Below are positions 13,325 through 35,554 of a DNA stretch of 64,000 nt, piece by piece. The stretch comes from Thalia democratica (Eukaryota). The notes under the pieces were generated by a model, which was not told the DNA's origin, made no database searches, and saw only the letters and a program-made list of their open reading frames with translations. Each line of letters starts with the position of its first letter. Position 1 is the first letter of the stretch. Made by a program: the position numbers and the translations under genes. Location of the stretch: contig OZ241832.1 of assembly GCA_965202585.1 (NCBI GenBank), positions 65,534,001 through 65,598,000 on the forward strand, in the 5' to 3' direction.

Positions 13325-13796
13325 AGTTATTTTTTTAAGTGTTTTGTTTTTAAATAAAAATAAGTATTATTTATTTTTTTTAATATACTATATTGATATA
13401 ACATAACAAGTTCGCTAAAATTTTTTCAAACTTTATACTTAAGTATAAAACGATAAACAACATATTTTATTCTACCAAAAAAGAAACACTTTTAATCTTC
13501 AATAAAAAACTATTAAAGTAAATTAAGCTGTTCATATGCTGTGTAAACAAACATATAAAAAGTTATTTTTTTAAGTAATTTGTTTTTAAATAAAAATAAG
13601 TATTATTTATATTTTTTTAATATACTATATTGTTATAACATAACAAGCTCGCTAAAATTTTTTCAACTTTTATACTTAAGTATAAAACGATAAACAACAT
13701 ATTTTATTCTACCAAAAAAGAAACACTTTTAATCTTCAATAAAAAACTATTAAAGTAAATTAAGCTGTTCATATGCTGTGTAAACAAACATATAAA
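13325..13796 (+). repeat. Tandem duplication, 236-bp period, 2 copies
   Basis: AGTTATTTTTTTAAGT starts at 13325 and 13561, and the copies are near-identical to ...AAACATATAAA. Confidence 0.9.
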
Positions 13797-13959
13797 TTAA
13801 TTTGCAAAACAAAAGTTTTAATTATTAATCTAATTTTGTCAGAAGTTTTTACACATTTAATCTGTTTAAAACCCAAGAAAAACAAATTTGAAGATTTTCG
13901 GTCAAACATTTATGTATTATTGCTAATAACAAATAAATATTTAGCTGCAATATATATTG

Positions 13960-14780
13960 TTTATGCAACATTACCGCTTATAAATGCGAGCAAAAACAAG
14001 TTTATTTGAGAAAACAGGAACAAGCTTTAATTCAACTACTTTTCACCCAGTAAAATTAGTTTGTATTGCTTTTTTAGATAAATGTAAAATTATCGCTTAT
14101 ATTCCCGGTTTTAAATAACGATTTTCCAAAGATGAACAAAATAGTTGTTCTAAATTCGCTTTCAGTACTTATACTATAAGTTATGTTGTAAAACAAAACT
14201 TTTTAGTACTAAATTCATTCTGTAAGAATTATTTACTCATTAAATATGTTTCAAAACCAAAAATAAAACAGTTTTTTTTTTAATTTCCGGTCAAACGTTA
14301 TTGTATGATTACTTATACGAGTAAACATTAAGATCCAATATTTATATTTTGTGTAACATTACCGCTTAGAAATGCGAGCAAAAACAAGTTTATTTGAGAA
14401 AACAGGAACAAGCTTTAGTTCAACTACTTTCACCCAGTAAAATTAGTTTGTATTGCTTTTTTAGATAAATGTAAAATTATCGCTTATATTCCCGGTTTTA
14501 AACTACGATTTTCCAAAGATGAACAAAATAGTTGTTGTAAAATAGCTTTTAGTACTTAAACTGTAAGTTAAATTGTAAAACAAAACTTTTTAGTACTAAA
14601 TTCATTCTGTAAGAATTATTTACTCATTAGATATGTTTCAAAACCAAAAAAAAAACAGTTTTTTTTTTAGTGTCCGATCAAACATTATTGTATGATTACT
14701 TATACGAGTAAACATTAAGATCCAATATTTATATTTTGTGTAACATTACCGCTTAGAAATGCGAGCAAAAACAAGATTTT
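13960..14780 (+). repeat. Tandem duplication, ~388-bp period, ~2.1 copies
   Basis: TTACCGCTTA...GCGAGCAAAAACAAG recurs at 13971, 14359 and 14746. Each unit also has ATCGCTTATATTCCCGGTT (14092, 14479). Confidence 0.9.
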
Positions 14781-14843
14781 ATTTCAACTACTGATCACCT
14801 ATTAAAAATCATTTGCATCGCTTTTTTAAATAATTATGAAGTT

Positions 14844-15057
14844 ACCGCTTATATTTGCGGTTTTAATTGGTTTATGAATATGCAAAAGATTTTGTAAACA
14901 CCGTTACAATTTTATAATTGCTTTCAGTATTTATATCATCACGTGATGCTGTAATTTGTTGTGTGACGTAAGCAGGTTTCTATAAAAAGTATTCTTGACA
15001 AAATTGCGACAGAATTGACTATAAAGTAGTAATTCTTACATTTATTGTAAAATATCG
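14844..15057 (+). promoter_or_regulatory. Multi-box cassette copy
   Basis: ACCGCTTATATTTGCGGT 14844; TGACGTAA 14964; TTGCGACA 15004; TATAAAG 15020; ATATCG 15052. Confidence 0.6.
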
Positions 15058-15885
15058 TTTAACTCTGTGTTTTAGTTTAATTTATTTAAACTTCTGCTTT
15101 TTTGTAAAATTCAATAAGATTTATATTATTTGTGTAATGTTTTATGATTTATCGTTGACTCTACAATATACCTATAAAAATTTTTACTTTTTAATAAAGT
15201 TCTAGCCATTATAAAAAAATTTAAAAAAAATCTCAACAATACTACTATAACACAAATAAAAACAGAAAAAAAAGAAACTAGTAAAATTTCTTGCTTATGT
15301 TCATAACACGGAACCAATTAATTATATAATAAAAGTATGAGGATTTAAAATTCACATAAAAATTAAGCACATAAATTTATCTATTAATAAATTGTAAATA
15401 TGTTCTAATTAAGTTTTATTAACATAGTTTACTTTATTATTAAATTTAATTTGCTGACCTATACTAAATTTAAAATTAATCGACTGTAACAGTTTATTAA
15501 GCTACTAAAAATTAAACATATAAATTCTATATTTCAAAAATATTTACAATAAATCGTAAAAAAGTTTTTATTAAGTTTTATTCTAATACTTTAATTTATT
15601 TTAAAACTTTGCGGTGAACTATGAAAATTTTCAAAAATCAAAACTTTGAGAAAAATAAGTTTTAAGCAGTTTTTTTTGGCAGTTACAACCTTTTAGTTGT
15701 GTTTAAAAAAAACGATCTAAAATAAAAGACTACTAATAATAAAATAATACTAACAGAACTAGTTACTTATCAAATTTGTATAAAAAGAAAAATTCCTAAT
15801 TGCTAACCATTTGCAGATCACAATTAAGCATCAAGCAGATTTTTTTTTACAAATTTAATTTATTTAAAAATTTATTTTGATAATT

Positions 15886-16128
15886 ACCGCTTATGCTTGC
15901 GGTTTTAAATAGATTTTTAGGTTGAACGATATCTTACAACACTGTTGCAAATAGAAAGTTGCTTTTAGTATTTATAATTTAACGCGATGCTGTAGATTGC
16001 TGGTGACGTCAGAGAAACAAAAGTTTTAGAAAATTTAAATTTTTATACAATTTGCGACAGATTTGATCATAAAATAGTAGTTGTTACTTTTTCCAGTAAA
16101 AAATGTTTGAATATGTTTGAATATGTCG
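15886..16128 (+). promoter_or_regulatory. Multi-box cassette copy
   Basis: ACCGCTTATGCTTGCGGT 15886; TGACGTCA 16004; TTGCGACA 16052; CATAAAA 16068; ATGTCG 16123. Confidence 0.6.
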
Positions 16129-17879
16129 TCGTATTATATAGTTAACAAAATTAGTCTAATTTTCCTAAAATGGTAAAATATTACATGAATTATACTAATT
16201 TTTATTATTAAAAGTGTCTGAAAGCAAAGCTTAAAAATAAGACTTAAATATAAATCTACATAAAGCCTTTTTTAAATTATTGAAATTAAGTTCAAATAAA
16301 AAAATATAATAAATATTTAATTCAAAACATATATTGAAAGTTTTATTTTATAGCAGGCACGTGGCTTGGTACGTTTCTACTTATACTTATATGATGCGAA
16401 AAAACTTGCTTTTTTTTCAGCTTAAAAAGAATCTGCTTTCTTAGCTTTAAGTACTCATTTAAACTTAGTTATGCACTCCTGAGAGATAATTTCGACATGT
16501 ATGTGCTCTCTAGCACAGTACAGTAAAGATTAAACGAATTAAATACATCCAAATTGTAACATTTAGCGTGTTAAAGCTTTTATTTGTCAAACAAATGCAT
16601 TGCAAAATTGATGCTAATGGAAGCTGTAGCTTCAAAAATCAAAATCATACAATTTTATGTTACAAAAATTTGCATAACTTGTTGTTACTATTGACTACGT
16701 TAAATGTATGATTTTGAATACAATATAAATGTTATTTGTTATGCAATGAGTTAAATTTTGATTTTTTTATACTTATTTAAATGAATGTTTTCTGGGTTTA
16801 CACAAGTGGCAACACATAAAGAGTCATAGTGGGTGTGGAGAAAAATAAATTGTATTGTATACAGTTATCACTCGTACTTCAACATTTCATTTTTGATGTA
16901 TTAACATAACTGCATAGTTTCAGATTAAATTCAATAACATTGGAGGTAGTCTGAGTTACTGGTTCCCGCTAGGACGTTATCTGCCGTCATTTCAGATGTT
17001 TTAATTTTTGTAGATTCTTTTTGAGGTAGCTAGTTATGTTTTATAGTATTTAAAACTTAAAAAAGAAATTAAGAATTAGTTAACATAACGACTTTGATTC
17101 AAAAATCTAATCATAAAATTCTATTAAAAAATAGTCTCGGAAAAAAACAACAACTAAAACTTAATAAAAGAACATTATTTTTAGTTGAACAAAAGTAAAA
17201 CTCGACAGTAAATACATTACATAGATTTATAATATTAAAAAACATTTAAAACAGCTTTATTATATTCAAAAAAAAAACTAGTATATTTTTGACTTTTACA
17301 TAAACATTTAATTTCATATCAAAAACATCAGTGTTGCAAAATTAAGACTACTAAAACGTAAAAAAACTCACTTTTACTAGTAGACATAAAGTAAAACTCA
17401 TCATCTGTATAACTTGTGATTTAAGTTGTTGGCATAACAAAATAAATTGTTTAATCGCTTTCTAAATATATGGTTTTTAAAGAACGGTTGATTTATTTGA
17501 GAATATTGCCAACTATTTTCTTTTTAGTTATGTCTGCAATTAATTCTTATATTTGTACTCAGCTGCCTAAAACTAAACTACATAAAAAATCAATGCTTTT
17601 AAAATACCAAACCTAAAACTCAGTTTAAAAAATTAAGTATTTTAGTAAGTTGTGTCTTACGAAATAAATAAAATGACTCAGTTCTTTCTTTTTCAATATA
17701 TTTACATCAATTTTCGTCAGGGAAAAACAATTGAAACAATAAACTAGGATAAAACACAACCAATATATATTAAAAAAATGTACTAATTAATCAATCAACT
17801 TCATGCAAGCGTAATAAAAATAAGTAAAATTTAAAATTAAACAAAATGGCTTTTAACTAAATAAGGCAAAAGTGTAATC

Positions 17880-18210
17880 AAATTTTTAATTTTACATAAT
17901 TTAGGTTTATTTTAATAATGGCTTGTAGTCTTATTAATTTAAAGTATTTGAATGTTGTCGCATCGCATAATACTTAATTTTGAAATCTCAAAATTGTTTC
18001 CACAACAAGCATTAATTACTAAATGTTCTTATAGCTGATTTTTTCATCGCATTATTGACTGCTACGCTCATTTTATCTTTTTTGTAACTGATTTGCGATA
18101 TAATACATTTTGGAACATGCTCTTTTATTCTTGTTTTTAGGTGACGGAAAGTTTGTCCAATATAGCTACTTTCACAGTAGCACTTAAACTTTGTATTCTA
18201 TAAGTTTTCT
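17880..18210 (-). mobile_element. Penelope-like GIY-YIG endonuclease remnant
   Basis: Minus strand reads FKCYCESSYIGQTFRHLKTRIKEHVPKC. Confidence 0.8.
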
Positions 18211-18965
18211 TCGTGCTTTAAAAAGATCAAGTAGAAAAATTATTAAATTTGTTCATTAAATCTTATGTTTTATTTAAATTTATATTAATTTGTTTATTGA
18301 ACTACAAAAAAGTGCTCAAAACATTTGATCTTAAAGCCTAGTGTACAAAGGAACCTATCGGTTATCGGATACACTACTTAGATAACGTGATCGTTCAGGA
18401 CATTGTTCAAAAATATTAAAATTGTTTACAGCTTAAGTAGTTTCGACATAACTTTTATAAGATCCTTACTAAGCAAAAATCTAATGCAATTACCAAAAAT
18501 TACTAAACTTTGAATGTAAAAAACGTACAGTTTATGTTAAATTTCAAATTGAGATTTTTCTTTTAATTTGTAAATCGCTAAAAAATTGTTTAAACAATAA
18601 ATATATGAACTAAACTTTGTTACTTGATAGAAATGTTACTTTAGCTTTAAGTATATCTTATAGGTTTAATTTTTAATTTATTAAAATCTACTGGCTATAA
18701 CTATGTAAACTTTCTAAAACTGTATTTTTATACCAATCGATTTTCTTATTTAAAAGAAATTTATTTGAATAAGTTTTAAAAACAATGTTTTATGTTCAAA
18801 CTTTAATTTAACTAACTTAATTTTTAGTTTAATTTAACAAACTTTGTTATATTTTATTGATTAAATACTTTTTTTTTAACAAACTACCAACAAGAAAATA
18901 AAAACCACACAACAACCTTACAATGAGTTTTGTTCGGTCGGAGCTAATAAAATAATTTTATGTAA

Positions 18966-19140
18966 ACCGCTTATGTTCGCGGCTTTAAAAAACACTTCAA
19001 TTCCGTATCTATTTAAAAATTGTATTAACAAAAACGTTATCTGTATTTATAATATTTGTGAAGTGATCTACTGTGTTGTGACGTCAGCAATAAAGAGAGA
19101 AAAATCATCAGCGTTACGGTTGAATGATTAGCGATAGAAA
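18966..19140 (+). promoter_or_regulatory. Multi-box cassette copy
   Basis: ACCGCTTATGTTCGCGGC 18966; GTGAAGTGATCTACTGTGTTG then TGACGTCA 19079; TAGCGATA variant at ~19129. Confidence 0.55.
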
Positions 19141-19539
19141 TTACTCTTATTAGATAATCTGTTACTAGTTCTCATATTGCTTAAATAAGTAGCATATTTC
19201 TAACTTTTTTTTTAATAGTCATAAAAGTTTTATATGATTCATTTTCATTACGTTTAACTTTCTCTTTATTTAAATCATAACTGTAAATAAATAACAATTG
19301 TAAAGCTTTTTAAGCTTTTGTTTAAGTATTATATCAGTATATTTAAACACAAAGTTGCTAAAGTGGTTATGCTGCTTTTTTGTTTTCATAAATAGTTTTA
19401 TAAAATTTTACGTATGTTTTAATTAATTTTAGTTTCAATTTAATTAAAACAACTTATGTTTTGTTAACTACCTTTTGCTCATTATTATTACTTTAACAAT
19501 GATAATTTTTTTATTATATAAGCTGGATTTTATACTTTA

Positions 19540-20520
19540 TGTTTTAGTTAGTAAACAGCCTTAAGAGTTAAGCACGAAATATATTTTATTATAAAAATTT
19601 GAGTTATGTGTACCTTTGAAATTAATTATTTTAAAACTAGATATCTCATATTTCCTAGCACAACCTTTATTGTTTATCAAATATTCTGCAATTGAAGATC
19701 TTGTAGCTGCGTTTTTGGTTGCTGTTGTCTTGATTTCAGATTCTTCTTCTGTAAATTTCAACACGAACGTAAGTAAACTTTTCTTGATACTCGTTTCGAA
19801 AATCTTCGAAGTTTGTCCAGTATAGCTTGTTTTTTTTTTTAGAAGCAATTAAATTTGTATACAACACAACTTTTGTTTAAATCTGGTATCAAATCCTACA
19901 ACTGCACTTTTAATACTGTTTTTGAGACAAATAAAATTCTTGAATTAACTTGATTGTTAAATTTTTTTTGTTAAATTGTTTACTTTATACTCAAGCACAC
20001 GTGGTGTTTCTCCAATATATGGTAATTTCAAAACTACTGGTAACTTCTCTAGTCCGTATATCTTAGGTTTGTCTAAGTTATTTGCATGTGATCTTATGAT
20101 CCTCTTAATCACATCTGGTGTGTATCCATTTTTTAATAGAGTGTCTTTTATTCTCTTCACCTCATAATGAAAGAGTTCTATTGAACAGATTTGTAGGCTA
20201 TCAAGGTATAGTTTCTTTTGTTAACTTTACTTTTGGCTTCTTACTTCAAAAATATTGGTAGTGTAAGTACTAACCAGTTAAAGTTGTTTTCCGTAGGAAC
20301 TAACACTGACAATCGTTAGGAATTTTGTTTCATCTTTAATATCTTCAATAGATCTAAAGTGGCCGTTAGTTGCTTTCTTCTACTTCTATAGTGAAAGTTA
20401 TCTCTTCATGTAAAGAATTATTTATTTTATGGAAAATAATTGTTTTATACTCATTATTGCATATAACTAAAAAATCATCGATGTATCTAATGTACACAAC
20501 CTGTGACGACAGCAATTTTA
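19540..20520 (-). mobile_element. Penelope-like element remnant (RT C-half, linker, GIY-YIG)
   Basis: Minus strand reads VVYIRYIDDFLVI (RT catalytic motif), LLKNGYTPDVIKRII...LKLPYIG (PLE linker) and SYTGQTSKIFET (endonuclease), with frameshifts. Confidence 0.85.
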
Positions 20521-22585
20521 GGTTCTAAAGGCTATCTCTATATTTTTAAACAAACCAGAACTGTTCAAACAAAAAGAATTTGATTACAGAGTGTAATTAT
20601 TAACTTAAATTAGCCATTTTGTTTCCTTTAATAATATTTTAGTTTAATGGTTATTAACATTGATTATTTATTGCGCTTATTAATCACTTTGTTCGTTTTA
20701 ACTCTTTTTTGTGTTTAGTGAAAAAGTATTCATAATTCTATGCTCTGTTATACTGCGAGTTTTTGAAGAAAAGAAGAGAAATACGTGTTTAACTGTTACA
20801 AAAAAGATTAGAGAGTGTTACATATTTGTTATATATCTAATTAAAAGAAAATAACGTTCTAGCTGTTTATTATATAAAGCTGCCGAAGTATAAATAGAAT
20901 ATTGAAATATAAATATAGGTAAAATAGAATATTTAAAACAATATGAATTTAAAAACATTTGTACAATCTTATATGAGTAGTCATTTTACTTAAATTACAT
21001 ATAAGGAATAAATCAAGTTTGGTGTTTAATTGATTTTATACATCTAAAACAGCAAAATTAATGTTGTCACTTTCAATAAATAAATGTACTAAAATCTTTA
21101 ATTATTAAAATTAGGTTAATTAAAGTTGAAGCGCTTTAGTCAATATTCTTCCAGTTTAACTATAAAAAAATAGTTTTAAAAGAAGAGCTTTTTATTTAAA
21201 GGAATATTAATGTAGAAAAAAAGAATTAAAATTTTAATTATTTTTCTAGGGTACTGTGTTGATTAGTTTTTTTTATTGTTGAGAATGAAGAAAGTTTAAA
21301 ACATAGAAAGGTATGCTATGCGACCATAACTTCACTAACTTTAATTTTTTTTTCTTTTGTAAAAAGGTTATAAAAGTAGAAATTAATAGCCTAACAGTTG
21401 TAAAGTATTGAGTTATATTGTTTTAACTTGTACTACTTAGTTCTTAAAGGTTATGTCAAATTTTTATCTAGTTTTCTATATTGTAAAAACTTTAAAGTTT
21501 CTATTTAGAGTTAGTTTAGACTTTGTTTATCTTTAAATGTTATTAAGTTGTAGAATTTAAATGTTTATCAAATGTTTTACAATAAATGATTAGTGTGCCT
21601 TAAAGTTATTTTAAAGGTATGATGTCATTTTTAAACATATAATCAATTAAGTAGTAATAAAAATTAGCGTAACCATTTTTAATACTAATAAAAATTAGCA
21701 TCTGTTGAGTTATCTTGGCAAAATATATTTTAGATTAAATAGTACTTACGAAACACGTAAAAACTATATACTTATATGTTATAGCTTTTTGATTAAACAA
21801 AACTTGCTTTCATAAAATAATAAGGAATAACTAAAACTAGATGTTATTAGAAACTGAGGTTAGCAACAATTACATAATTGTAAGTTATTAACTTATATTT
21901 TAAGTTGCAACTATTCATCTGTTTCAATATTACTTTTAATATCAGTAGCTGAATAAAACTAAACTACAGACTAGTAAACTAATTTTCAAAATATAAAATT
22001 TTGATCATTACAGATAAACAAACAAATACAAAGGCAGTGATTTTAGTTCAACGTTTTTTTTTTCTTTTTCATTAAAACATGTGATTTACTAAAAGCATAA
22101 AACAAACCGTATTAAAACACTTGATAAGTTTGTAAATTTAAAGAAGTTAAATATACTCTATCAGAATCTTACTACTTAAAATCAACTTAGATTCGAAGTA
22201 ACTTATAATTTGTTAAAAATGAATTTTAACAAATGTAAATAGATAACATTAAACTTGTACTATGTAAATAAACTTTTAGTTTCAAAAGTATATATAAAAT
22301 ACAAACATAATTTGAATAAATGTTTAATTTTTTACCTTTTTTTTTCAACCAAGATACTCCCAAACTTGTTTTCATAAATGCCTACTTGGCGGAAATAAAA
22401 ACTATAGTCTGCCCATTATTAGATTTTACACTTTTACTTTTTTACCGCCTTACTAGTTATTGCTCCCTGCCTTTTGAAGAATTTCAACAAGGAGTAATTT
22501 GGCCACATTAGGAAACCCTCGTTTAACTTCTGCACAAATATTGCAATTTACAATATCTTGAAGTTTTACTTTTAATATAAAAGTC

Positions 22586-22795
22586 TGGTGTTATTTGCTC
22601 TCTTCTTTTGCCACAGGTTTCCTTGTTCATAAAGTACTGATTTACATGCGTTTTTTATTAGACCTAAATCTTCAGTAGGTACGCTAGTAAAAATACCAGC
22701 AAATTTTAGTGATTTTGTTACCAATTCTTCGCTGATAGAAGGATAAAAATCGACTACATCAAACTTAAAAAAGCTGTACGTTTGTTTTGGGCAAA
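22586..22795 (-). mobile_element. Inverted 5' segment of the PLE at 22796-24290
   Basis: Minus strand reads YSFFKFDVVDFYPSISEELV...KSVLYEQGNLWQKKRANNT, the RT region directly upstream of the plus-strand ORF. About 35 bp (22586-22620) is the exact reverse complement of 22796-22830. Confidence 0.9.
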
Positions 22796-24030
22796 AACCT
22801 GTGGCAAAAGAAGAGAGCAAATAACACCAGCTCTCTTTTTGATGTAGCGCAGGGATCGTTTATGAATGCAGAGTTATGTGAATTAGTAGGTCTTTTTTTG
22901 TTAGATGGGTTGAAGAATATCTTTGGTTTAGAAAGAGTTGGGTTGTACAGGGACGATGGTCTAGCTGTACTGCCCAATTCTTCTGGCTTTATAGTTGAAA
23001 GGCTAAAAAAACAAACGCACGCCTTCTTCAAGTCTATGGGGTTAAGAGTCACTATTGAATCACCAATGTTGACGACTGACTACCTGGATGTGAAGCTCAA
23101 CTTGCATGATCTCTCCTATATGCCTTATAAAAAGAAAAACTCAAAAATTATGTATATAAATAAAAATTCTAGCCACCCAAAAAATGTTATAAACCAAATG
23201 CTAAAAATAATTAATAAACGTTTAAATAAAAGATCAAGCAACGAAGAAAACTTGTTAAAGACAAAACAAGATTACGAACTAATAATGAAAAAATGCGGTT
23301 ACAATGATAAACTTAATTTTGAAACAACGGAGCAAAAAAACAAAACGACCAATAAAAGTAAAAGAAAGCGAAATATAATTTGGTGTAATCCCCCATTCTG
23401 TACTTCAGTTAAAACAAACATCGGCAGAGAATTTATAAACCTAGTAAAAAAACATTTCAACAAAAATAACCCATTATCAAAGATATTTAACAAACATAGT
23501 ATGCGAATCAGTTATTCATGTATGGCGAATTCGGAGAGATTAATCAAGTCACATAATCAAAGGATTTTAAACAAAAGTAATTCAATCAAAAATCAGTGTA
23601 ATTGCGCCGGTGGCTGTAAATACAATTTGAAGGGGAGCAATTGCCGGTCAGAGAACATTATTTACAAGGCAACAGTTAACTCTGACCTTGAAAAGAAGTT
23701 CTACATCGGCCTATGCTCCACTCAATTCAGATTTCGGTATGCCAACCATAAAAAATCCTTTAAGGTGGTGTATACGAAAATGAAACTGAGCTTTCGAAGT
23801 ATGTTTGCGGCCTTAAGCGCAAAAACATTGATTTTAAATTAACTTGGGAGGTGATAAAAAGAGCACAGCCAATAGCAGATGGTAACAACCCTGTTTGTAG
23901 GCTGTGCTTAAAAGAATCAACAGCCGTTATGTATGCGTTAAAAAAGGAAGGTTGTTTAAATAAGCGAAGCGAATTTTTATCGTCTTGTCGACATATAAAA
24001 AAGCTTCTTTTAAAACACAACAAATTTTGA
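22796..24030 (+). pseudogene. Penelope-like element RT (C-half) plus GIY-YIG endonuclease, 5'-truncated, one frameshift near 23765
   Basis: QGSFMNAELCEL, GLYRDDGLAV (RT), CNC..C..LKGSNCRSENIIYKA..FYIGLCSTQFRFRYANH (GIY-YIG). The shifted frame gives YENETELSKY...WEVIKRA...CRLCLKE...LNKRSEFLSSCRH, ending at TGA 24028-24030. Confidence 0.92.
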
Positions 24031-24209
24031 AGCATTTTATAGTCAATTAACTGTTGTTTTCGTTAATTTTAGTTGTTTAATTAGTTAGAAGGTAGATCGA
24101 TTTTTGTACTGAATATTTGTAATGTACAATATTATGTCATACTGTTTTTTGTTTTTTTGCATAACTTTTGTATCTTTGTTTAGTACAGTGCTTTTTATTT
24201 TGAATTTAA

Positions 24210-24266
24210 CTGGCTGATGATCAAAGCTTTATGAAAAATTAAAGCTTTGTGAAACATATGTTCCAG
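24210..24266 (+). ncRNA. Type I minimal hammerhead ribozyme in the PLE 3' pseudo-LTR
   Basis: ctgg-CTGATGA-t-caaagcttt/aaagctttg-t-GAAA-catatg-TT-ccag. Stems I and II pair, stem III is palindromic, and the predicted cleavage triplet is GUU. Confidence 0.85.
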
Positions 24267-24411
24267 AATTTTTAAAATCGCCATTTGAATATATATATAT
24301 ATATATATATATATTGATTTAAGTTATTTAACTTCATAAATCAAATCTTTCACACGGAGCCCACCTTAAGGGCTTTTTTAATAAAAAGTTTTATTTCAAG
24401 ATATAAAACTT

Positions 24412-24450
24412 GAAGAACTAGAGTTTCGTGCTTATGCACTCATCAACTTC
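24412..24450 (-). ncRNA. Minimal hammerhead ribozyme, core variant
   Basis: Reverse complement: gaag-TTGATGA-gtgc-ataa-gcac-GAAA-ctctag-TT-cttc (C3 to U). Confidence 0.75.
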
Positions 24451-25080
24451 AAAACAAGTTCAAAAAAAAGCACAAAACAAAAACACACAAATGAAAGTTA
24501 AAAAATTTAGCATAAATAGATTATGACGTTATTTTGAAACTATCAAAAACCATGCAAAACGGCTTGTGCAAAAATTAATTTACCAATCGACAATAAACTG
24601 GCAAAAATTCATAAAACTTCAGTGAGTAACTATATTTTATGACAGATAATTGAAAGAGATAAAGGTAAAATTAAGATAAAAAGCTAAATAAAAATTGAAA
24701 TTTAAACTGTTATAAGATGAAACTAAAACTTGTTAAATTTTAAAAGCGATTTTTTTATATGTCTACAAGATGATACAAACTCGCTTCTTTTATTTAGGCA
24801 TCTCTTGTTTTTCAGTGTATATACAACGGATGTTGCTTCTTTGAGACACAGCCTACATATTGGGCTGTTGCCGTCAACTATAAGTTGTGCTCTTTTTATA
24901 ACTTCCCAGGATATTTCAAAGTAATTTTTGCCAGTTTATTGTCAATAGGTTAACTAATTTTTGCACAAGCCGTTATGCATGATTTCTGATGGTTTCAAAA
25001 TTACGTCATAATCAAATTGTGCTAAATTTTTTAACTTTCATTTAAGTGTTTTGTTTTATACTTTATTTTGAGCTTGTTTT

Positions 25081-25119
25081 GAAGCTGATGAGTTCATAAG
25101 AACAAAAGTCGAGTCCTTT
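25081..25119 (+). ncRNA. Minimal hammerhead ribozyme, probably inactive
   Basis: gaag-CTGATGA-gttc-ataa-gaac-AAAA-gtcgag-TC-cttt (G12 to A). Confidence 0.7.
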
Positions 25120-25246
25120 AAGTTTCACATTTTGAAATAAACCATTTTATTAATATATATATATATATATCAAACTTGAACACCTTCTACAGAGCTCACT
25201 TGAAGGGCTTTTAAATAGATTATTAGTAAAACACGATTTTAAAATA

Positions 25247-25292
25247 CTAGTACATATATTTCATAAAACTAAACGCTGTAATCATCAGCTAG
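25247..25292 (-). ncRNA. Minimal hammerhead ribozyme
   Basis: Reverse complement: ctag-CTGATGA-ttacagcgtttagttttat-GAAA-tatatg-TA-ctag. The core is intact and stem II is weakened. Confidence 0.75.
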
Positions 25293-25325
25293 TTGCGTTT
25301 TAAATGCTTGTAATTTTAAATGGAA

Positions 25326-25371
25326 TTAGCCGATGATTAAAGCGTTTAGCTTCATGAAACATACATACTAG
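25326..25371 (+). ncRNA. Degenerate hammerhead, inverted partner of 25247-25292
   Basis: ttag-CCGATGA-ttaaagcgtttagcttcat-GAAA-cataca-TA-ctag. Confidence 0.6.
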
Positions 25372-26019
25372 TATTTTAAAATCGTATTTTTTTAATAAAC
25401 TATATATATATATACTTTTGTCCATAATTTTTTTTTTGGACAGAAAAGCAAGTAGGCTGAAAAAATGTTTTTTCTAAGCTATTTTCGTCTATTTCTAAGG
25501 GAAATAAATATTATCATAACATAAAATTACTGTTCTTAAACTTTTATTTTTAACTAAGGCACTTGAAAAAGTGGTATTTCTTTTAATAACTACACATTTT
25601 TAATATTCTAGTGTGCATGGAATTTCTTTCCCAGTAATTTAGTGTGCAAATAAAAAGGCTGACGGCCTGTATTTTATACCATTAATATCAAAAACAGCTA
25701 AAAGCTTAATTTTGAAATTCTAAATTAAAGTTATAAATTAAGATCCTTTTGATCTCTTCACATTATTAAAAAAATCAAATCTTATTTCAAACTTTCACCT
25801 AAAAACTAGTCAACAAACAAGCATTCAGATGTACTGTTTTATTTATGAGTTTTTTTCACTAAATAAGCTTTAATATCCAGCAAAAGTTTCTGTAAACAAA
25901 CACATACTATCTGAATTACGATTTATTTAACTGTTGATGTAAAAATAAGTCAAAAGATTTTCAACTAGTACTTGTCACAAGTAAGTATTCGATTAAATTG
26001 TTAGTAATAATGTTAAGTT

Positions 26020-26250
26020 ACCGCTTATGTTCGCGGTTTCAAAATGGTATGTTTTAAGTGCAGATTACAATACGCTTAAACAAGTTGTATGGTATAAGAT
26101 TGATTTTACATATAATCAAACTTGTGAAGTTATGTATTGTGGCTGACGTCATTAAAATAAAGAAACTTGATTTGCTTGACTAACTTTGAAGAGATTTGCT
26201 TATAAAAAGTGAATAGTATTACATTTTCTCAACATTGTTTGACTATGTCG
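26020..26250 (+). promoter_or_regulatory. Multi-box cassette copy
   Basis: ACCGCTTATGTTCGCGGT 26020; GTGAAGTTATGTATTGTGGC then TGACGTCA 26144; TATAAAAAG 26201; ATGTCG 26245. Confidence 0.6.
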
Positions 26251-28261
26251 TTTGATTTTATTGAGAATTTTTATTTAATCAACTTAAAATATTACACGTA
26301 GTTTATTCAGATTTTTATGGTATTCGCTCATTTTAAAGTTAAGCTAATACTTTAATATTAATACTAGTTAAGAAAACACTTAATATGAAATAAATTAGTT
26401 TTATGAAAACAATAGTATTGAGTGGATTTCAGTGTTTGAAATAAAAAAATTACATGACACTTACAATTGAAGTATTTAGTACATTAGTAATACTAAAAAA
26501 CTATTATTTTTTAACAACTACAACGGCTACAAAATATATTTCAAAAGTTTCAAAAAAAAAGTCAAAAACTTGTTATAACTTGTTTTTGTTTTGAAATTAA
26601 ATATTTTGAAAACAATATACATTTTAAGAAAGATATTAGTTGTTTACTGTTTTATCTAATTCACATTTTTTGTAAAAAAGTTTTAAATATCAGTTAATAT
26701 CCATTAACAATATCTGCATTATTTATAATTAATTAAAACTTACTTGTTTCTTTGTTTAAAACTTATAATTTTATTTGAGTATTGTTAAAGTTTTAGCAAC
26801 TTGCAAATGTTTACTATCTTTTAAACTAAAATAAAATAAAACAAAATTGTTTAAGATCCGCAGTCCGCACACTATAGAAAACTTCTTTCTCAGGGTACAA
26901 ATAAATAAAACCTTATAGCAATCAATTAAAATATATAACATTAAATTAGAATTTTGATACAACAAGTATAAAAAACTGTAACTATATACTATCAAAAATA
27001 GTCATATATTTTACTAAAAATAATATTTTTTTATTTCAAAAACGAATAATTTAGTTGAAAATTACATGGCTGAATGCGTGATTATATTTAGCGAACCGTC
27101 GATCTACAACCGTTTCATATTTTTACTAATAATAAAAGTGAGTTTTCTGACCGCTGATACAGGAGTAAATTAAACTAATAATTGTGGTTAAATATGTATA
27201 CCGGTTTTTTTAAGGCTTTTAATGTAGACCTTATGTTATACATTTCCGCTTTTTTAGGTTGTTTATTACTTGTATTACTTGTTTATTATTTTTTGCAGTG
27301 AAATTTTTAGATTTTAAAGTGTTATGAAATTACTTAAAGCTTGCTAGTTTTAGTTTTTACATTTTATCAAAAATTATTATAGATTAATTATAAATTTTTA
27401 ATGTTTTTAGTTATAATTTTTACTATAATTTTCAACCAACAAATATTATCTACTAACACTTAGCTTATATTATTTATAATATTTTATCTTACAAAAGTAT
27501 ACTGAAATAGTTCTAATGCTAAAACCAGTAAGTTAGTCTAAGTGAAATTTATAACTTTAATAGTGATATTAAATTTTTTAAAATTTACTAGTTTTAGTTT
27601 TAAACTTTTATATAAAAAATATCATCGTTTAAAATAAAGTTACCCAACACTTTTGGTTATTGTGATTAATTATGTATTTAAAATAATAATTATTATCTAC
27701 TAAACACTATTGAAAACTTTACCTATACTAATCTTTATTCTTTAACTCTTGTCTCTGATTTATAATTTTTTTTTAATTCAAAATGAATATATTTCACCCA
27801 ACAGTTAATACTTACTAACTATATTTGAGATATATATACCTTTGCTAACATTTATTTAAAAAATTTAAATAAATTTTAAATCAATATCTAATTAAAAAAA
27901 TTAAAAATCATGAAGTTTATAATTGATAACTATTAAAACTGCTCCTTTAGTAAGTAAGCAAGCAGTAATTGAATAACTTTGCAATAAACTAAGCCTATAG
28001 TTTAAATTAGAGTCTCCAGATGATAATAACAATAATTAAACTAAGTGGTAAATATTTTGATCTCCTGTTTTGAACCAAAACTCACCTGTAAAATTACTAT
28101 GATTAACTGATAAAACAAAATCATTAGATTACAGAGAAGTTCAGATAACAACAAAAAACGTGCGACGCATCCAGACATCTAAATTTATTTGTATCGGTAC
28201 TTTATTGCACATCAAGTAGCTTTATGTGCAATAAGAAAGCAATTGAAATTATAAAATGTTG

Positions 28262-28461
28262 ACCGCTTAAACTGCGGTTTTAAATTGATGAACTTGAAAA
28301 TTTTTGAAGAAAAGCTTAATCTGTAATAAATTATTTTGAATAAGTATAAAATTTGAGAAGTTGTGTATTGTGTGATGACGTCAGTAGCGAATGTTGAAAT
28401 TCGTCGCAAATTTACTTTTACTTATAAAGGCTTGTTAAAAATAAAGTAGTTTTTTATATCG
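28262..28461 (+). promoter_or_regulatory. Multi-box cassette copy
   Basis: ACCGCTTAAACTGCGGT 28262; GAAGTTGTGTATTGTGTGA then TGACGTCA 28376; inverted GTCGCAAA 28403; TATAAAG 28423; ATATCG 28456. Confidence 0.6.
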
Positions 28462-28873
28462 GTTTTAAAATAGTTTTTGCAAAAAATCCTCAATTAAGTT
28501 CATCAAAATTTATCTTTTTTATTTCTCTATTTTTTTTTTTGTATTTTATAAAACACTAACTAAAAACCTTATATTTAAAAACTATTTACAATTGCAATAC
28601 TTTAAATCAGTTCATAATTTTTTTGCTGAAACCTAGTATAATATTAATGAAAATTTTTATTATAGATTTTTTTAGATAATTTTATTAAAAGTATTTATCA
28701 TATTCACTTTTAACCACACTTAAAGAAAAAATGTAGTATATACTACTAGTGATTAGTTTTCGTGTTGTTAATAAAAAACGAAGTTAAATCGTTTATAATC
28801 AATTTATTTTAAAGAAAACTTTTACAGCAACTTTATGCTAACCTGAAGAAAGCAGTTGTAGCTATGAAATTTG

Positions 28874-28992
28874 ACCGCTTTTACTTCCGTTTTGTATTGA
28901 TGACTTTAAAGTTCATTTTAATAAAATATTCATCTTCATTATATTATTTTGAATAAGTATGACGTTTGTGAATCGATGTATTGTATGAACAA
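28874..28992 (+). promoter_or_regulatory. Degenerate cassette copy
   Basis: ACCGCTTTTACTTCCGT 28874; TTGTGAATCGATGTATTGTATGAAC about 95-115 bp later; the CRE is lost. Confidence 0.4.
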
Positions 28993-30459
28993 GCTTCTTG
29001 TTTAATTAAGCTTATTAATAATTATTATAGCAAGTGTTTACAATAAAAAATTTTTAGTATTTTACTTTCAAGTTTAATTGAAAGTTTTACAAAAACTTTT
29101 AACTTGATAAAAAATTGTATATAGCTACTCAAATGACTTTGTAAAAACTTATTTGAAATTAAAGTTATTTAGTAATATATCATACATAATTAAAAAACTC
29201 TGTTTAAACAATTGTTAATTAACATTGATTGGGAAGAAAACTTGTTTAAAAAGTAAAGAAACGTTACCTTGTTTTTATTAGTTTATGAAACACATAAGAA
29301 ATTAACAAATCATTTTTTGGTCAAGGAATGTTTTTTGATCTTTTCAGTTCTATTTTAAAGCTTAGTTTTTTAAGTCCAAGTAAATGATTGTGTTTTAGTC
29401 TTGTTCATAGTTTGTAAAAATTAAAAACTGTAGTAAAGAACAACTTGAACTAAATATTGACTTAATAACAAAACCAAAAAAAAATTAGTTGTGAATTAGT
29501 AACAAAAAAATTAACATTTTTACAAGTTGTTGTGGAAAGCAAGAGGAAAAATTAAATTTAAAAATTACTTTTAGTTTTATATCAAATAAGTTTTTTAATG
29601 TAAAGTTATTATAAACTGATAATTAAAAAGCTTAAAAATTTTTTTTACATAAATATTTAAGCATCCGAGATAATTTTATTACATCTTTGTTTTTATTTAT
29701 AACATAGTTTTAATCTATTTAGCAATTGTAGAAACCTTGTTAACATCAACTAGTCAAAATATCTAAACATTGGTGCTTTTAGCTAATTAGTAAAACTAAA
29801 AGTATTATTAAAACAAATTGAAATTATATAAAACGCGACAGCTTTAATAAGAGGTAAAACTTAATAACTTTTCTGTCTAATTACACCTTGTAACAGTTTA
29901 TTAACAATACTTTTTTTCAAATAAAATATGAATAAAAAGTTGTTTTAAGTTATTGTTGAAATAGTTCAAAGATATAAAAAACTTATATTATAAATATTTT
30001 ATTTTGTGCTGTATAAGCATTTATAAGACTTAAAATATTTAATTTAAGAATTGCACTTTTAATAAAATCTGTAACCTTTTGATTGACTAAGGTAAACTTA
30101 CTATCTGTTTTTAATAGTTTGAATGAAAACATAATTGATAATTAGTGAAAAGACTTATTTTATTTGTAACAACTTTTCTAAGGTTATTGCTTATAGAAAA
30201 AAGTTTTTTGATGATAAACACTTAATTCAAAAATTTATTAGTCACGAAGTTTGTTATCAATTAATATTCAAACTACGTTTATAGTAAGTAATCAAGTAGT
30301 AATTGAATAACTGCGTAATAAAGTAAACCAGAAGTTATTATAAAAACAAAAACCATGCCATGCGTCTGGCTGGACATTTAAATTTATTTGTATCGATATT
30401 TTATTGCACACAAAATAGCTTTATGTGCTAAAGAAAGCAATTGAAACAATGAAATGTTG

Positions 30460-30915
30460 ACCGCTTGAACTGTGGTTTTAAAGTGGCGATTCAGTATTTG
30501 AACATTATCTTAAAAAGTAGTTTAAACTTAAACTAAAGGGTAGAATCATTTTGATTCAAAGTAAACTATATTAACTTCGATGAACTGATTGAAACATATT
30601 CATGTTATTTCAGAGAATTTTTTGTTAAAACAAATATAAACAAAGCATCCAGACGTTTAGGTTTATTTGCAATGAAATTTGATTTTACTGCGCAACAAAT
30701 AGTTTTAAGTGCTGAAGAATTGAAACAATGAAATGTTGACCACTTGAACTGCAGAGTGGCAATTCAGTATTTGATGATGAACATTATCTTAAAAAGTAGT
30801 TTTTGAAAAAATTTGTGAAGTTAATGCGAGATGACGTCATCAGCGAAAATTAAAATTTGTCGCAAACTGATTATTTATAAAAGCTTGTTATAAAGAAAGG
30901 TAGTTTTTAATGTCG
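30460..30915 (+). promoter_or_regulatory. Cassette copy with a locally duplicated first box
   Basis: ACCGCTTGAACTGTGGT 30460; ACCACTTGAACTGCAG 30739; TGACGTCA 30832; inverted TGTCGCAAA 30858; TATAAAAG 30876; ATGTCG 30910. Confidence 0.55.
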
Positions 30916-32724
30916 GTTGTTAACGTATTTTGCGCAAAAAAATCGTCAATTAAGTTTATTTAAGCTCACCTGTTTTTTTCTTGTTCTTTTTTTTTTGTAT
31001 TTTTTACGACACTAACTAAAAACCTTACATTTGAAAATTATTTACAACTGCTATACTGTAAATCAGTTTGTAAACTTTTTATTTCAAAACTAATATAATA
31101 CTTTAGATAAACGATATATTACATTTTCTACGTAATTTTATCAAAAATATCTATCGTATTCACTTTTAAACATTTTTCTGCTTTGAACTAAATAATTAAC
31201 CTTCTTACACTTAATTGAAATTTTTCCTTAAACAGCTTAAAATGATTTACTTTGTTTTACTACAAGAATGTTTAAACTTTTTGTTTTTTATATAAATAGC
31301 AATTTTAAGTATTATTAGTTTTCAAGATAATAATGAAAAACTTAATTAAATCAATTATACTTAGTTAATTTTAATCAAAAAGTTTTACAGTAACTTTATG
31401 CTAACCTTCGATTTTAGTTATAAGCAAACTTAACTAATAGTAAAAACATTTTTGTTGCAAATAAACAATTTGTTGAGCATTATAAGTTCACGTTTTTGTA
31501 TTCTGCTTGTAATACAGTCTAAAACTTTTTTTAAATATAATAAACGTGACTTTTTATTTGGTTTCCTTTATAATATTTAATTGATTATTTTGCCTGACGA
31601 ACATTTTTTTTAATTGATCTATAAGGTATTTAATTGCATGAGTGAAGTCATTGCATGATAAAGTATAAATGCATCAAAATTTGTATAGAACTCCAGTTCG
31701 AAACGTTTTGTCTTTAAAAAAAAAACTGTTACTTTTTTGTTTAATTTACTAAAAAGAAAAAAAATAAAATAAAAACCTTGTCTCATAAGTTGTTTTTATT
31801 TGTATACAAAAAAATAAGTACTAATTATTCAATCTAAATTAAGAATCAATAATATAAGTTTTAGTTATAAAAAAGTAATTTATTAAGCAAGTTTTGTTGT
31901 ACACAAATGTAGTTGTAACTGTTTTTTTTTAATTTTTAACTTTTTGGTGGTTTAATAGAGTTATACCATAAAGTTTCTTAAAATATTTGTTTTTTTAAAG
32001 AACATTCAGTTCGTAATAAGATTTTTAATTTTGCTGCATTAGATTTAAATTTCTACAAATTATATTCTGAAATTTTTAATTTTTATATTCCTACACTTGC
32101 GTTTTGCAAACTTTCACTTTATATATTTCAAAGTTGTAGATGATATGTAGGATACTTCTTAAGAGATGTGTTTTGAATTTTTTCAAAAGTATAAACGTTA
32201 ATTTTGGAATATGTAAAGGATTTTTTTCTTTAAAGCCATAAAAGTTTTTGATAACTTTTGTTTTTCATAAAACTACAAAAATAGCATTAATTCGGTCTTA
32301 GTTAAGTCCTTTGCTTTGTTTTACTTTTAAGAAAAAGTTTGTAGATTTAGTTGCATCAACGTTTGATTTTATCACACAACTAATACCTTTCTATTTTGAA
32401 GAAACTAGATGAAGCTATAAACTATTTAACATTTTACAACTTGTCCTATAAGAACTTCGTGGACAAAAGTCTTTTGATTTAAAAGTTAAAGGTTTACAAA
32501 AACGTTATATTTTTTTTTAATTGGTAAAGTTTATAAAGTTTGTAGTTCAACGCAATCAATGTTTCATTTTACATTTTAACTTGTCTATATGCTTAAATTT
32601 TTAAATATAAAAAACAATTTTTTAATATAAATAATACTTTGTGAACTTTATTTATTACAAGCAAGGAATTTTTTTTTGTAATTGAAATATTTTTTTTACA
32701 TTAATAGAAATTAGGTAAAGCTAG

Positions 32725-32845
32725 CTGCAATTGAAACAGCTTAAAATATAAGATGAACATTGGATATTCATAGCACTGATTTATAAAATAACTTTTCATA
32801 TATATATTTATCAATGAAGTGGTGTATTGTGTTGTGACGTAAGCA
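32725..32845 (+). promoter_or_regulatory. Partial cassette copy
   Basis: TGAAGTGGTGTATTGTGTTG then TGACGTAA 32835; the first box has decayed (ACAGCTTA). Confidence 0.45.
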
Positions 32846-33446
32846 AAAGCATAAACAATTAAAATTGACGCTTTTAATAGAAATGAGATTGATTTTATTT
32901 CCTTTTTTAAAGTTGCTTGTTATATTACGCTGATAATTAATAAGTGTAGAGAATACTTGTAGAAATATACATTAGTAACTAAAATTTTACTGCTTACCTT
33001 AAATTCAATTTTTTTTTCAATCATTAACTTGATAAAAAATATTATTGCTGCCAAACTGACTTTGTTTTCATTTATTTAAAGTTAAAGTTGTTTGACTTTA
33101 TGTCATACATAATTAAAAATATTTTTTTTAATATTTTAAAATAATACTAAATTGGAACAAAACTAAGTAAAAAACTTAAACTTAATTTTTTAGTTCTTTT
33201 TAAAAGCTTAGTTTTTAAATCTCAAGTGATTTTTAGTATTTTAGTCTTTGTCAACATTTAATTTAACTATTTGAAAAAACATCTTAACGTTTGTTAATAT
33301 AGGTATAAATGTTGTGTTTACAACTTTTATGTTTACCAATAAAAAGTGAGACATTTTGTTGAGTAAAAATATATTGAACTAAATTTGCAACTAGAAATTC
33401 TCATTTACGAACTTTAACGTATATTGCAAGACTTGATGTAGTTATT

Positions 33447-33566
33447 GTCGCATATTTTGCGGTTGAAAATATTTATTTGCAGAAGTGAAATCATGCAAGC
33501 ATGTGTAATATATTCCACAATAAAATTTAATATCAATGAATTGATGATTTGTGGTGTGACATAAGC
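33447..33566 (+). promoter_or_regulatory. Degenerate cassette copy
   Basis: GTCGCATATTTTGCGGT 33447; TGAATTGATGATTTGTGGTG then TGACATAA 33557. Confidence 0.45.
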
Positions 33567-34374
33567 AGCAAATATTCAAACTTCTGTTGGAAATTAACTT
33601 TTATTTTAATATTTATGTTTAACAGAAACGTTAAATTTTTATTTTTAAGTTAATTCTAATGTAAAAATATAAGTTTTTATGAATTTTAAAGTATACAAGA
33701 GCTAATTTTTAGGCAAGTTTTAAACTGTTTTTTTATGATTAAAAAAAACTTTAAATGTATTTTATTATTGTTCATTTTTAAATTTACCAAGTATACAATA
33801 CTTTTATCCTAATTAACTATAAATTTTTTACTCACACAGCTTTGAATTTTTTTATAATCTCAACTTATTTATTAAATAGTTTCTTTACTTTTATAAGTTT
33901 ATTTGATTTTGAAAGGTTTTTAATATTTTACTAAAGAAAAAAAAACTTATTTAAACAGCAGAAAAACTACAAATAGTTTTTGATATTTTATAAAAGTAAA
34001 GCCTAAGGAATTAGTTAATATTTCAAGTATGAATAATTACTAACTTAATTTTTTATAACTTTTTATTAATTTATTTTTGATTTTATGATGAAATTTAGTT
34101 AAATGCAATTAGTTTAGAAAAATCTAGTCAAAATTGATATTAAAGTTTTATTTAATTGTCATTGTGAGCAAAACTAAGTACAACGATTGATCTAACAAAT
34201 TCAAAAAAAATGATACAATGTAACTATTTTGTTAAACTTATATTAACTCCTTTTTTGTGTTTTGATTAATATTCAATTTACTTAAACAATATACAAATAT
34301 GAAAAATTAAATTAGAAAGCAAAAATTTAAGATATCTGTAGAAATTGAGAAAAATATTGTATATAATATAACAA

Positions 34375-34492
34375 ACCGCTTAGAATCGCAGTTTTAAATT
34401 GAAAAATTAACTAAACCGAGCTAAAATTAACACAAAATTCGCTGAACAACAATATTTTATCATTGAAGCCATGTATTTGTGGTGTGATGTGA
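34375..34492 (+). promoter_or_regulatory. Degenerate cassette copy
   Basis: ACCGCTTAGAATCGCAGT 34375; TGAAGCCATGTATTTGTGGTG then TGATGTGA 34485. Confidence 0.45.
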
Positions 34493-35554
34493 GTAACGAA
34501 TATTTAGATTTCCATTTGAAATTTTGAACATTATATTTACTTTTTTTTTATAACTGAAAAATTTATGTTTGTAAAAAAATAGTGAAAAATTCTAAATAAG
34601 ATAAAAACAAAAAAATCTTCTAAAAATTACCATAAAATTACTGAAATTAAATTGCTGTAAAACTCAACTGTAAGATAGCTTAGATTAGCTGATTAGAACA
34701 AAAACTCGACGAAAAATCACAAAACAACTTTTTTGTACGAAACCGTAAAATTACTGTGACTGACAAATTAAAAAAAAAAATAATAATAATGTGCCACTTT
34801 TGTAGAAGTAGTTGCATCAAGATTTGATTTTAGTACACAGAAAATAACTTAATGTTTTGGAGAAAAATGAAACTATAAAACTTTTGACATTTAAAATTGG
34901 TTGTATAAGAATTTTACGAAAAAATGTATTTTGAACATAAAAACTTTAATTTGTTTAGAATAGGTAAAATTTAAAAAGTTTGTAATTTTAAACAACCAAT
35001 GTTTCGTTTAGCATAATAAGTTTTTTACATGCTTAAATTTTGAAAAGTTGAATTTAAAAAGACAATTGTTTTTTTAATATTTTTTCAAATATTATATTAA
35101 AGCTAACTTTTACTTATGCATCTAATCTCCAAACTTTAAGCATTTTTATTAATTTTTTAATGAAAATCATGGAGATAAATTAAAATAATTATCTTCTTTG
35201 GTTTTGTATAAGTTTTTTTTTATTCAAATATTTATAACAAATTTATTATTACAGATTGTTTTTTGTACAAAAGCACTTAAGCTATCGAGTTATTTTTTAC
35301 ACCTTTTATTTTTCTTTTTATACAACATTACATTAAGTAATTATAAAAAAAATTAATGTATATGTAAAACTAAAAGTAGAATTAAAAACTATATGTTATG
35401 CAACAGTTTTAACAGATCAAACTTTATAAGTTTCAAATCATTGTACACGTTGTACAAAATATTAAGTAAATATTTTTTCGAAATTAAGTTTGAATAAAAC
35501 TTGTATTAACTATTTAACTGACAAAACTATTTAGAATATACGTTCGTCTTAAGC

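Follow-up and report, generated by a model that had tools for sequence, protein, structure and literature searches.

Diverged promoter-like cassettes clustered in Thalia democratica as candidate mini-genes for short, hairpin-tailed RNAs

A 64,000-nucleotide stretch of the Thalia democratica genome (assembly GCA_965202585.1, contig OZ241832.1, positions 65,534,001 to 65,598,000 of the forward strand; hereafter the window, numbered from its first letter) carries at 13.9-34.5 kb an array of about ten diverged cassettes, in which a small hairpin and a conserved box joined to a cAMP response element (CRE) are kept in sequence, order and spacing. The interpretation that we favor, with confidence evenly balanced for and against, is that these clustered cassettes are minus-strand mini-genes for short non-coding RNAs, about ten in number, which arose by tandem duplication and have diverged, each having a promoter in the style of small nuclear RNA (snRNA) genes, a head that varies between copies and a constant hairpin tail. 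The anatomy of the cassettes, their pattern of conservation, their spacing and their lack of coding capacity are observed directly and are laid out first.

Profile scans resolve the array into nine full cassettes, a partial copy at 30739, a hairpin without its promoter at 30460, and decayed copies; nhmmer places the hairpins of the full cassettes at 14844, 15886, 18966, 26020, 28262, 28874, 32722, 33447 and 34375, recovering the list of about ten same-strand copies from 14844 to 34375 drawn up in an initial annotation that was made from the letters alone (its ~32725 is our 32722). All share a single orientation, and a profile scan of the 64-kb window found none on the opposite strand or beyond the array, which arose by tandem and segmental duplication. 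The array lies in DNA of 21-24% GC (10-42 kb), compared to roughly 30% in the flanks. The heptamer ACCGCTT occurs 18 times on the plus strand of the window and twice on the minus strand; 12 of the 18 fall at 13148-34375, 11 of these being hairpins of cassettes or decayed cassettes, and the remaining six come from a repeat at 48-61 kb that has no relation to the cassettes. TGACGT[CA]A has seven plus-strand sites in the window, every one of them inside a cassette; TGAAGTnnTGTATTGTG with at most two mismatches gives four matches vs 0.36 expected, and the CRE, TGACGTCA, is a perfect palindrome in six copies.

Conservation is concentrated in two blocks. Mean pairwise identity in the nine-copy alignment is 65% for the hairpin block and 63% for the box plus CRE, 48% for the TATA-like segment beside the box, and 36% for the spacer, where unrelated AT-rich pieces aligned likewise give a baseline of 27% (standard deviation 3.5); BLAST alignments between distant copies are confined to the same two blocks, of 32-40 bp. 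Hairpin and CRE start 109-124 nt apart (mean 115, standard deviation 4.5), and CpG dinucleotides number 5.2 per 100 bp in the blocks vs 1.1 in the rest of the array. In the dead copies, namely that at 28874 and those in a 387-bp tandem repeat, the hairpin arm, TATA-like box and CRE have been lost jointly. The two blocks are conserved well beyond the intervening DNA, and the boxes are under selection. These values bear out the earlier statements that boxes and spacing are kept while the DNA between them is barely alignable and that CpG-containing boxes survive in AT-rich DNA; boxes no better kept than the interbox DNA, which the initial annotation had named as telling against its proposal, are the reverse of what we find. 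Two of its details required correction: the exact pattern ACCGCTTA-N-GCGGT has no match, the hairpin loop being 7-8 nt, and the 110-124 bp that it measured to TGAAGT is really the distance from hairpin start to CRE.

Read along the minus strand, full copies present the order CRE, 4-5 nt, CACAATACA-nn-ACTTCA (the conserved box), 5-9 nt, TATA-like box, 67-77 nt, hairpin, trailer; the lineage of copies 14844 and 15886 has an E-box-containing variant of the conserved box. A minus-strand TATA-like box is found in eight of nine copies, starting 32-38 nt from the CRE; it is TATAAATA in three copies and of the ATAAA(A/T)A type in most others. The final 9-13 nt of the stretch between TATA-like box and stem are a conserved U/A-rich AATTTAAAA, and the stretch that is free to vary amounts to 37-52 nt in the cassettes of the window. 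The terminal hairpin is a 5-bp CCGC/GCGG stem with a loop of 7-8 nt, after which comes the conserved trailer. A TATA-like box 5-9 nt past the conserved box, with the hairpin about 70 nt further on, implies a promoter that points at the hairpin, and this minus-strand layout persists in copies that have no TATA/ATRTCG elements on the plus strand. The individual copies are listed here by hairpin start, in plus-strand coordinates, together with the plus-strand elements that lie beyond the CRE in some of them:

13902-14784, no strand assigned: 387-bp tandem repeat of 2.3 copies, 92% alike; decayed cassettes in which hairpin arms, TATA-like box and CRE are all mutated
14829-14976, minus: cassette 14844; hairpin 14844-14861, TATA-like box 14927-14936, E-box-containing box, CRE-like TGACGTAA 14964-14971
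15004-15057, plus: elements beyond the CRE of cassette 14844; TTGCGACA 15004, TATAAAG 15020, ATATCG 15052
15871-16016, minus: cassette 15886; hairpin 15886-15903, TATA-like box 15968-15977, CRE 16004-16011
16052-16128, plus: elements beyond the CRE of cassette 15886; TTGCGACA 16052, and ATGTCG 16123 beyond a 10-bp tandem duplication
18951-19091, minus: cassette 18966; hairpin 18966-18983, TATA-like box 19043-19052, box 19057-19075, CRE 19079-19086; plus-strand elements decayed
26005-26156, minus: cassette 26020; hairpin 26020-26037, box 26125-26141, CRE 26144-26151
26201-26250, plus: elements beyond the CRE of cassette 26020; TATAAAAAG 26201, ATGTCG 26245
28247-28388, minus: cassette 28262; hairpin 28262-28278, box 28356-28372, CRE 28376-28383
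28401-28461, plus: elements beyond the CRE of cassette 28262; TCGTCGCAAA 28401 (an inverted TTGCGACA-like motif), TATAAAG 28423, ATATCG 28456
28859-29000, minus: cassette 28874; truncated, decayed duplicate of cassette 28262, lacking the 3' hairpin arm, TATA-like box and CRE
30446-30515, minus: copy 30460; hairpin block alone (ACCGC/GTGGT), no promoter block
30726-30843, minus: copy 30739; hairpin damaged by a 6-7 nt deletion that takes GTTTTAA, no minus-strand TATA box, box partly deleted, CRE 30832-30839 intact
30857-30915, plus: elements beyond the CRE of copy 30739; TTGTCGCAAA 30857, TATAAAAG 30876, ATGTCG 30910
32707-32847, minus: cassette 32722; replacement hairpin AGCTG/CAGCT 32723-32741, box 32815-32831, TGACGTAA 32835-32842; no plus-strand elements
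33432-33569, minus: cassette 33447; hairpin 33447-33463 (GTCGC/GCGGT), CRE-like TGACATAA 33557-33564; no plus-strand elements
34360-34498, minus: cassette 34375; hairpin 34375-34392 (ACCGC/GCAGT), CRE position mutated to GTGATGTGAG; no plus-strand elements

Minimum-energy folding of the predicted RNAs recovers the conserved stem in 8/8 minus-strand RNAs vs 5/8 plus-strand RNAs. Pair counts made by hand on the hairpin arms give the perfect ACCGC/GCGGT pair in four copies, and cassette 32722 has at the homologous position a different, fully complementary stem, AGCTG/CAGCT; a stem of at least 5 bp with at least three GC pairs would arise by chance in 1.2% of 30-nt windows taken at random from the array, and this replacement, a single case, favors a structural role of the hairpin.

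When the start is placed about 29 nt past the TATA box, the conserved box (GTCAC..CACAATACA..ACTTCA) falls at about -40 to -55 and the CRE at about -60. The proximal sequence element (PSE) of animal snRNA genes is centered roughly 50-55 bp upstream of the start (PMC1761439). The conserved box thereby appears to occupy the position expected of a PSE; in sequence, PSEs are poorly conserved between taxa. As to the polymerase, T4-T6 runs fall within the predicted RNA in 7/8 copies, which makes RNA polymerase II (Pol II) likelier than Pol III; with T runs inside the predicted RNA and no consistent T run past the hairpin, the cassettes do not behave as members of the Pol III class.

From this layout we infer transcription itself, its strand, the polymerase and the ends of the RNA, as follows. 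Each unit would have an external promoter of the snRNA or CRE-TATA type, with the CRE TGACGTCA about 60 nt upstream of the predicted start, CACAATACA-nn-ACTTCA at about -45 and the TATA box at about -29, and would be transcribed by Pol II in the manner of snRNA genes or of paused Pol II rather than by Pol III. The predicted transcript, of about 60-70 nt, would open with a head of 25-40 nt that is free to vary, continue into a conserved U/A-rich single-stranded linker, AAUUUAAAA, and close with the 5-bp GC-rich hairpin (CCGC-loop-GCGG) and a conserved trailer of 10-12 nt; the hairpin block might serve as a 3'-end signal or as a handle for protein binding.

Several observations weigh against this interpretation. 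The variable head is no more diverged than neutral flanks, and thus may be mere spacer. The G-U wobble variants, which could have told the strands apart, are divided 2:2 (pairing is by G-U on the plus strand only in 30460 and 33447 and on the minus strand only in 18966 and 34375), so the strand test is a draw, and one compensatory copy makes for weak statistics. The hairpin arms double as two inverted TGYGGT (Runx-type) half-sites. The conserved box was matched to the PSE by its position, not by comparison with a PSE or a U1 or U6 sequence of the host, and an initiator-like TACA/GCAA lies 26-31 nt past the minus-strand TATA box in 5/8 copies only, which at a post-hoc p of about 0.005 is only suggestive. 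Searches for public runs of the organism gave no RNA runs, only X1 and X2, which over 25.9-31.4 kb are genomic DNA contigs of even depth (about 38x). Finally, the plus-strand TATA/ATRTCG set is significantly non-random, yet the mini-gene model has no need of it.

That plus-strand set is the basis of the main alternative, in which each cassette is a Pol II promoter on the plus strand for non-coding or very short transcripts, with the hairpin palindrome at about -205, the box and CRE at about -90, TTGCGACA at about -50, TATAAAG at -32 and the start at ATRTCG; we consider this unlikely. The initial annotation had described the best copies as continuing with TTGCGACA, TATAAA and ATRTCG, and their placement is indeed beyond chance: all three copies of TTGCGACA in the window are in cassettes, along with one TCGTCGCAAA variant; ATRTCG follows TATAAAG(TAGT) by about 32-34 nt in three copies (by 45 and 55 nt in two others); and of the 12 ATRTCG sites on the plus strand of the window, 5 are located 78-119 nt past a cassette CRE, a looser distance than that between hairpin and CRE, with a binomial p of about 1e-5 when only three independent lineages are counted. 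The elements recur in three separate lineages, and their geometry would resemble that of the vertebrate snRNA promoter, which has a distal element at about -220, a PSE at about -50 and a TATA box at -30; GTTTTAAAT, past the hairpin, we take to bear a loose resemblance to the snRNA 3' box, and the hairpin with its TTTT(AAA) could terminate the preceding unit. T runs directly past ATRTCG rule out Pol III for such a model.

What speaks against a plus-strand promoter is that its core is found in only 5 of the roughly ten copies, being absent from 28874, 32722, 33447 and 34375 and decayed in 18966, all five of which keep the hairpin and box; that nothing downstream of ATRTCG is conserved between lineages; and that the next hairpin is 0.3 to 7 kb away and the tight spacing of hairpin to box is left unexplained. 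ATRTCG reads ATATCG in 2/5 copies, in agreement with the earlier remark that it is ATA in two of five. In the frame of the minus-strand mini-gene the same elements fall at about -110 to -190, which is where snRNA distal elements would sit, and TTGCGACA, TATAAAGTAGT and ATRTCG, across the CRE in five copies, may either belong to the same promoter as distal enhancer elements or mark a second, divergent start. Of the original proposal of a selected, promoter-like non-coding family, then, selection on the blocks and the absence of open reading frame (ORF), Rfam and tRNA matches stand, while the plus-strand core is not universal and the layout that is universal reads on the minus strand.

A bidirectional arrangement would accommodate both sets of elements, the palindromic CRE serving the mini-gene on the minus strand and also driving, in the five copies that are complete, a non-coding transcript on the plus strand. 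Both TATA-like boxes are placed beyond chance, as such an arrangement would have it, and the CRE is symmetrical in the six copies noted above; it nevertheless requires two unproven transcripts, one of which is dispensable in half of the copies, and we regard it as quite improbable.

The Runx-type half-sites raise a different alternative, that the array is a cluster of factor-binding sites, i.e. an enhancer cluster with no dedicated transcript, in which paired Runx-type half-sites and a CREB/ATF basic leucine zipper composite are held at an enhanceosome-like fixed spacing and the shared orientation stems from tandem duplication. TGYGGT is kept in 7/10 of the 3' arms, and both CpG-to-TpG variants (30460 and 30739) retain the Runx consensus, so that a palindrome acting at the level of DNA may still be entertained and a Runx reading of the arm is compatible with the sequence; the CRE and its CRE/PAR-type variants TGACGTAA are also kept, in a domain that is not CpG-depleted. 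A Runx site leaves unexplained the replacement in cassette 32722, which exchanges both arms for a complementary pair that has no TGYGGT core; a TATA-like box at a fixed distance from the conserved box is a feature of core promoters rather than enhancers; and the 64 kb of transposable element (TE)-rich DNA contain no gene that is an obvious target. We judge an enhancer cluster to be a distinctly poor prospect. Poorer still, and very improbable, is a non-functional remnant such as a decaying macrosatellite or transposon interior, for although tandem and segmental duplication gave rise to the array, recent amplification has produced the 387-bp repeat of dead copies within it, and the array lies in a TE-rich window between the arms of a 1-kb inverted repeat, neutral decay would not hold two CpG-rich blocks at 63-65% identity amid randomized DNA, distant copies align over two blocks only, unlike TE copies, and the cassettes, read directly, show no terminal inverted repeats (TIRs), target site duplications (TSDs), poly-A tails, A/B boxes or Helitron CTRR ends.

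Other identities were considered and rejected. Protein coding found no support, as the initial annotation had held in reporting no ORF: the similarities among ORFs of at least 18 aa at 11-40 kb, compared all against all, recur in every frame and reflect similarity of the DNA only, and the 1.2 kb downstream of each cassette contains no ATG ORF of at least 50 aa. Known RNA families gave no Rfam match at gathering score in the window, or at E up to 5 in 12-38 kb, and no tRNA. A spliced-leader RNA gene is not supported, the head not being conserved and no donor lying at a fixed place; a 16-nt leader ascribed to Ciona has no exact match in the window and no match within the cassettes. For a TE (short interspersed nuclear element, miniature inverted-repeat transposable element (MITE), long terminal repeat element or Helitron), no termini are seen in the cassettes, and similarity is limited to the two blocks. 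A pattern scan for metagenome relatives returned 17 matches, all GC-richer than the array and none with the conserved box, which we read as chance.

Among known systems, snRNA-type genes (U1, U6, U7) resemble the cassettes in being clustered in the same orientation and in having an external promoter with upstream activator sites, in which a box precedes the start by about 45-55 bp and a TATA box by about 29 bp, and their products resemble the predicted RNA in being short and in ending in a hairpin that follows a U-rich single-stranded stretch; from work on sea urchin U6, some snRNA genes reportedly have a CRE/ATF site and an E box. The cassettes differ from them in having no Rfam snRNA match, a head that is not conserved between copies, and T runs inside the predicted RNA, and the linker AAUUUAAAA differs from the canonical Sm site RAU4-6GR. 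The predicted RNA is similar in form to U7 snRNA, which is likewise about 60 nt long with a single-stranded, guide-like 5' part, a U-rich site and a single 3' hairpin; the cassettes, however, lack both the single conserved 5' sequence by which U7 is complementary to histone pre-mRNA and its special Sm site AAUUUGUCUAG, and the Rfam U7 model gives no match to them. CREB-target CRE/TATA promoters of Pol II have the palindromic TGACGTCA within 40-60 bp of the TATA box, as the cassettes do on both sides; unlike these promoters, the cassettes have no downstream gene, ORF or conserved exon and form about ten arrayed copies, each with a fixed hairpin partner. Non-autonomous Helitrons and MITEs share with the cassettes short conserved blocks, one of them a hairpin, that are repeated in many copies amid unrelated AT-rich DNA; the cassettes differ in their fixed block spacing, lack of TIRs and TSDs, lack of CTRR 10-12 nt past the hairpin, and stem of only 5 bp.

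The nearest described analogue in logic appears to be the nematode PIWI-interacting RNA (piRNA) mini-genes, none of whose defining motifs is present in the cassettes. These mini-genes are described as borrowing promoter machinery from snRNA genes (SNPC-4/USTC) and as using Integrator for termination on short transcripts (PMC6317315, PMC6436959, PMC7917550), and the type-I (21U-RNA) genes, as portrayed there, would share with the cassettes their organization as many individually promoted, clustered units whose transcribed part is specific to the copy. Differences lie in the predicted RNA, whose roughly 60-70 nt end in a constant hairpin tail, where the nematode genes give capped precursors of about 28 nt, and in the number of copies, about ten in the window against thousands of independent nematode loci; the Ruby motif CTGTTTCA, which in nematodes lies about 40 nt upstream of the 21U-RNA, was not found in the cassette alignments. 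It is tempting to view the cassettes as members of a very large lineage-specific family of individually promoted guide-RNA genes, a chordate-side counterpart of the nematode mini-genes in which the head would be the guide, and the linker and hairpin a handle recognized by a dedicated RNA-binding protein or used in Integrator-type processing of the 3' end; we put this forward as a rather doubtful extension of the mini-gene interpretation. Within the window the heads have no significant complementarity to potential targets.

The array coincides with a distinct domain of base composition, which is bracketed by an inverted repeat:

12001-36000, no strand assigned: domain not CpG-depleted, observed/expected 0.77-1.13
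11195-12226, no strand assigned: left arm of the inverted repeat, 82% identity over 1049 bp
36985-37998, no strand assigned: right arm, partner of 11195-12226

Outside this domain the CpG observed/expected ratio is 0.26 at 8-12 kb and 0.20-0.41 at 36-44 kb, and the boundary is sharp and lies roughly at the arms of the inverted repeat. Such a sharp domain between depleted neighbors suggests that 12-36 kb may be an island left unmethylated in the germ line within methylated DNA. At one end of the array, a 237-bp tandem duplication (97% identity) at 13324-13796 closely precedes the 387-bp repeat that is made up of dead cassettes, and this end has been amplifying recently. In one sub-family a further 100-150 bp are kept on the plus-strand upstream side of the hairpin, with the pattern GCATCCAGAC ... 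TTGCACA-N11-TGTGCAA, at 28170-28262, 30365-30460, 30644-30739 and 36893-36990, the copy at 36.9 kb having no hairpin; RNAalifold gave no supported structure for plus-strand RNA upstream of the hairpin.

The array is split by an insertion of about 6 kb at 19500-25450, which contains a 357-codon open frame (22769-23839), internal inverted duplications (23823-24028 vs 24929-24725, and 24378-24609 vs 25153-24923) and a perfect 36-bp inverted repeat (22585-22620 / 22830-22795); the C-terminal part of the open frame looks GIY-YIG nuclease-like by eye and has no significant Pfam match. A repeat family with at least six copies at 4.9-5.5 and 47.8-61.2 kb (...CCACCGCTTTGACAAAATGATTTCC...) contains short GIY-YIG-like ORFs and is the source of ACCGCTT outside the array; one of its ORFs, at 56031-56270 on the minus strand, matches Pfam GIY-YIG at E = 0.001, short of the curated cut-off. 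An open frame at 50625-51359 on the minus strand encodes tandem repeats of about 33 aa, with CSTILSDGTFSTAPTNFFSQLYTVHGEIPAGVKSQ-like units, and has no meaningful Pfam match. At 62700-63050 on the plus strand, two short exons resemble the C-terminal part of an axonemal dynein heavy chain, one matching residues 3957-3988 of PDB chain 8glv_Fm at E = 0.25 and the other recognized by eye only; no further dynein exons were recognized upstream in the TE-rich 38-62 kb, and apart from these two exons the remainder of the window is TE debris.

We found no description of such a cassette family in tunicates in the literature. Nematode piRNA genes are, to our knowledge, the only genes so far known to use snRNA-style promoters for diverse short sequences. 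If the cassettes are transcribed as predicted, they would make up a family of tiny RNA genes that expresses many short sequences on a constant hairpin scaffold from housekeeping, snRNA-style promoters; this would be a second, independent co-option of the snRNA promoter machinery for a diversified small-RNA repertoire, and would raise the question of what the variable heads recognize. Even on the plainer readings, the array is a clear case of selection on promoter grammar, that is on the sequence, order and spacing of boxes, in saturated AT-rich DNA.

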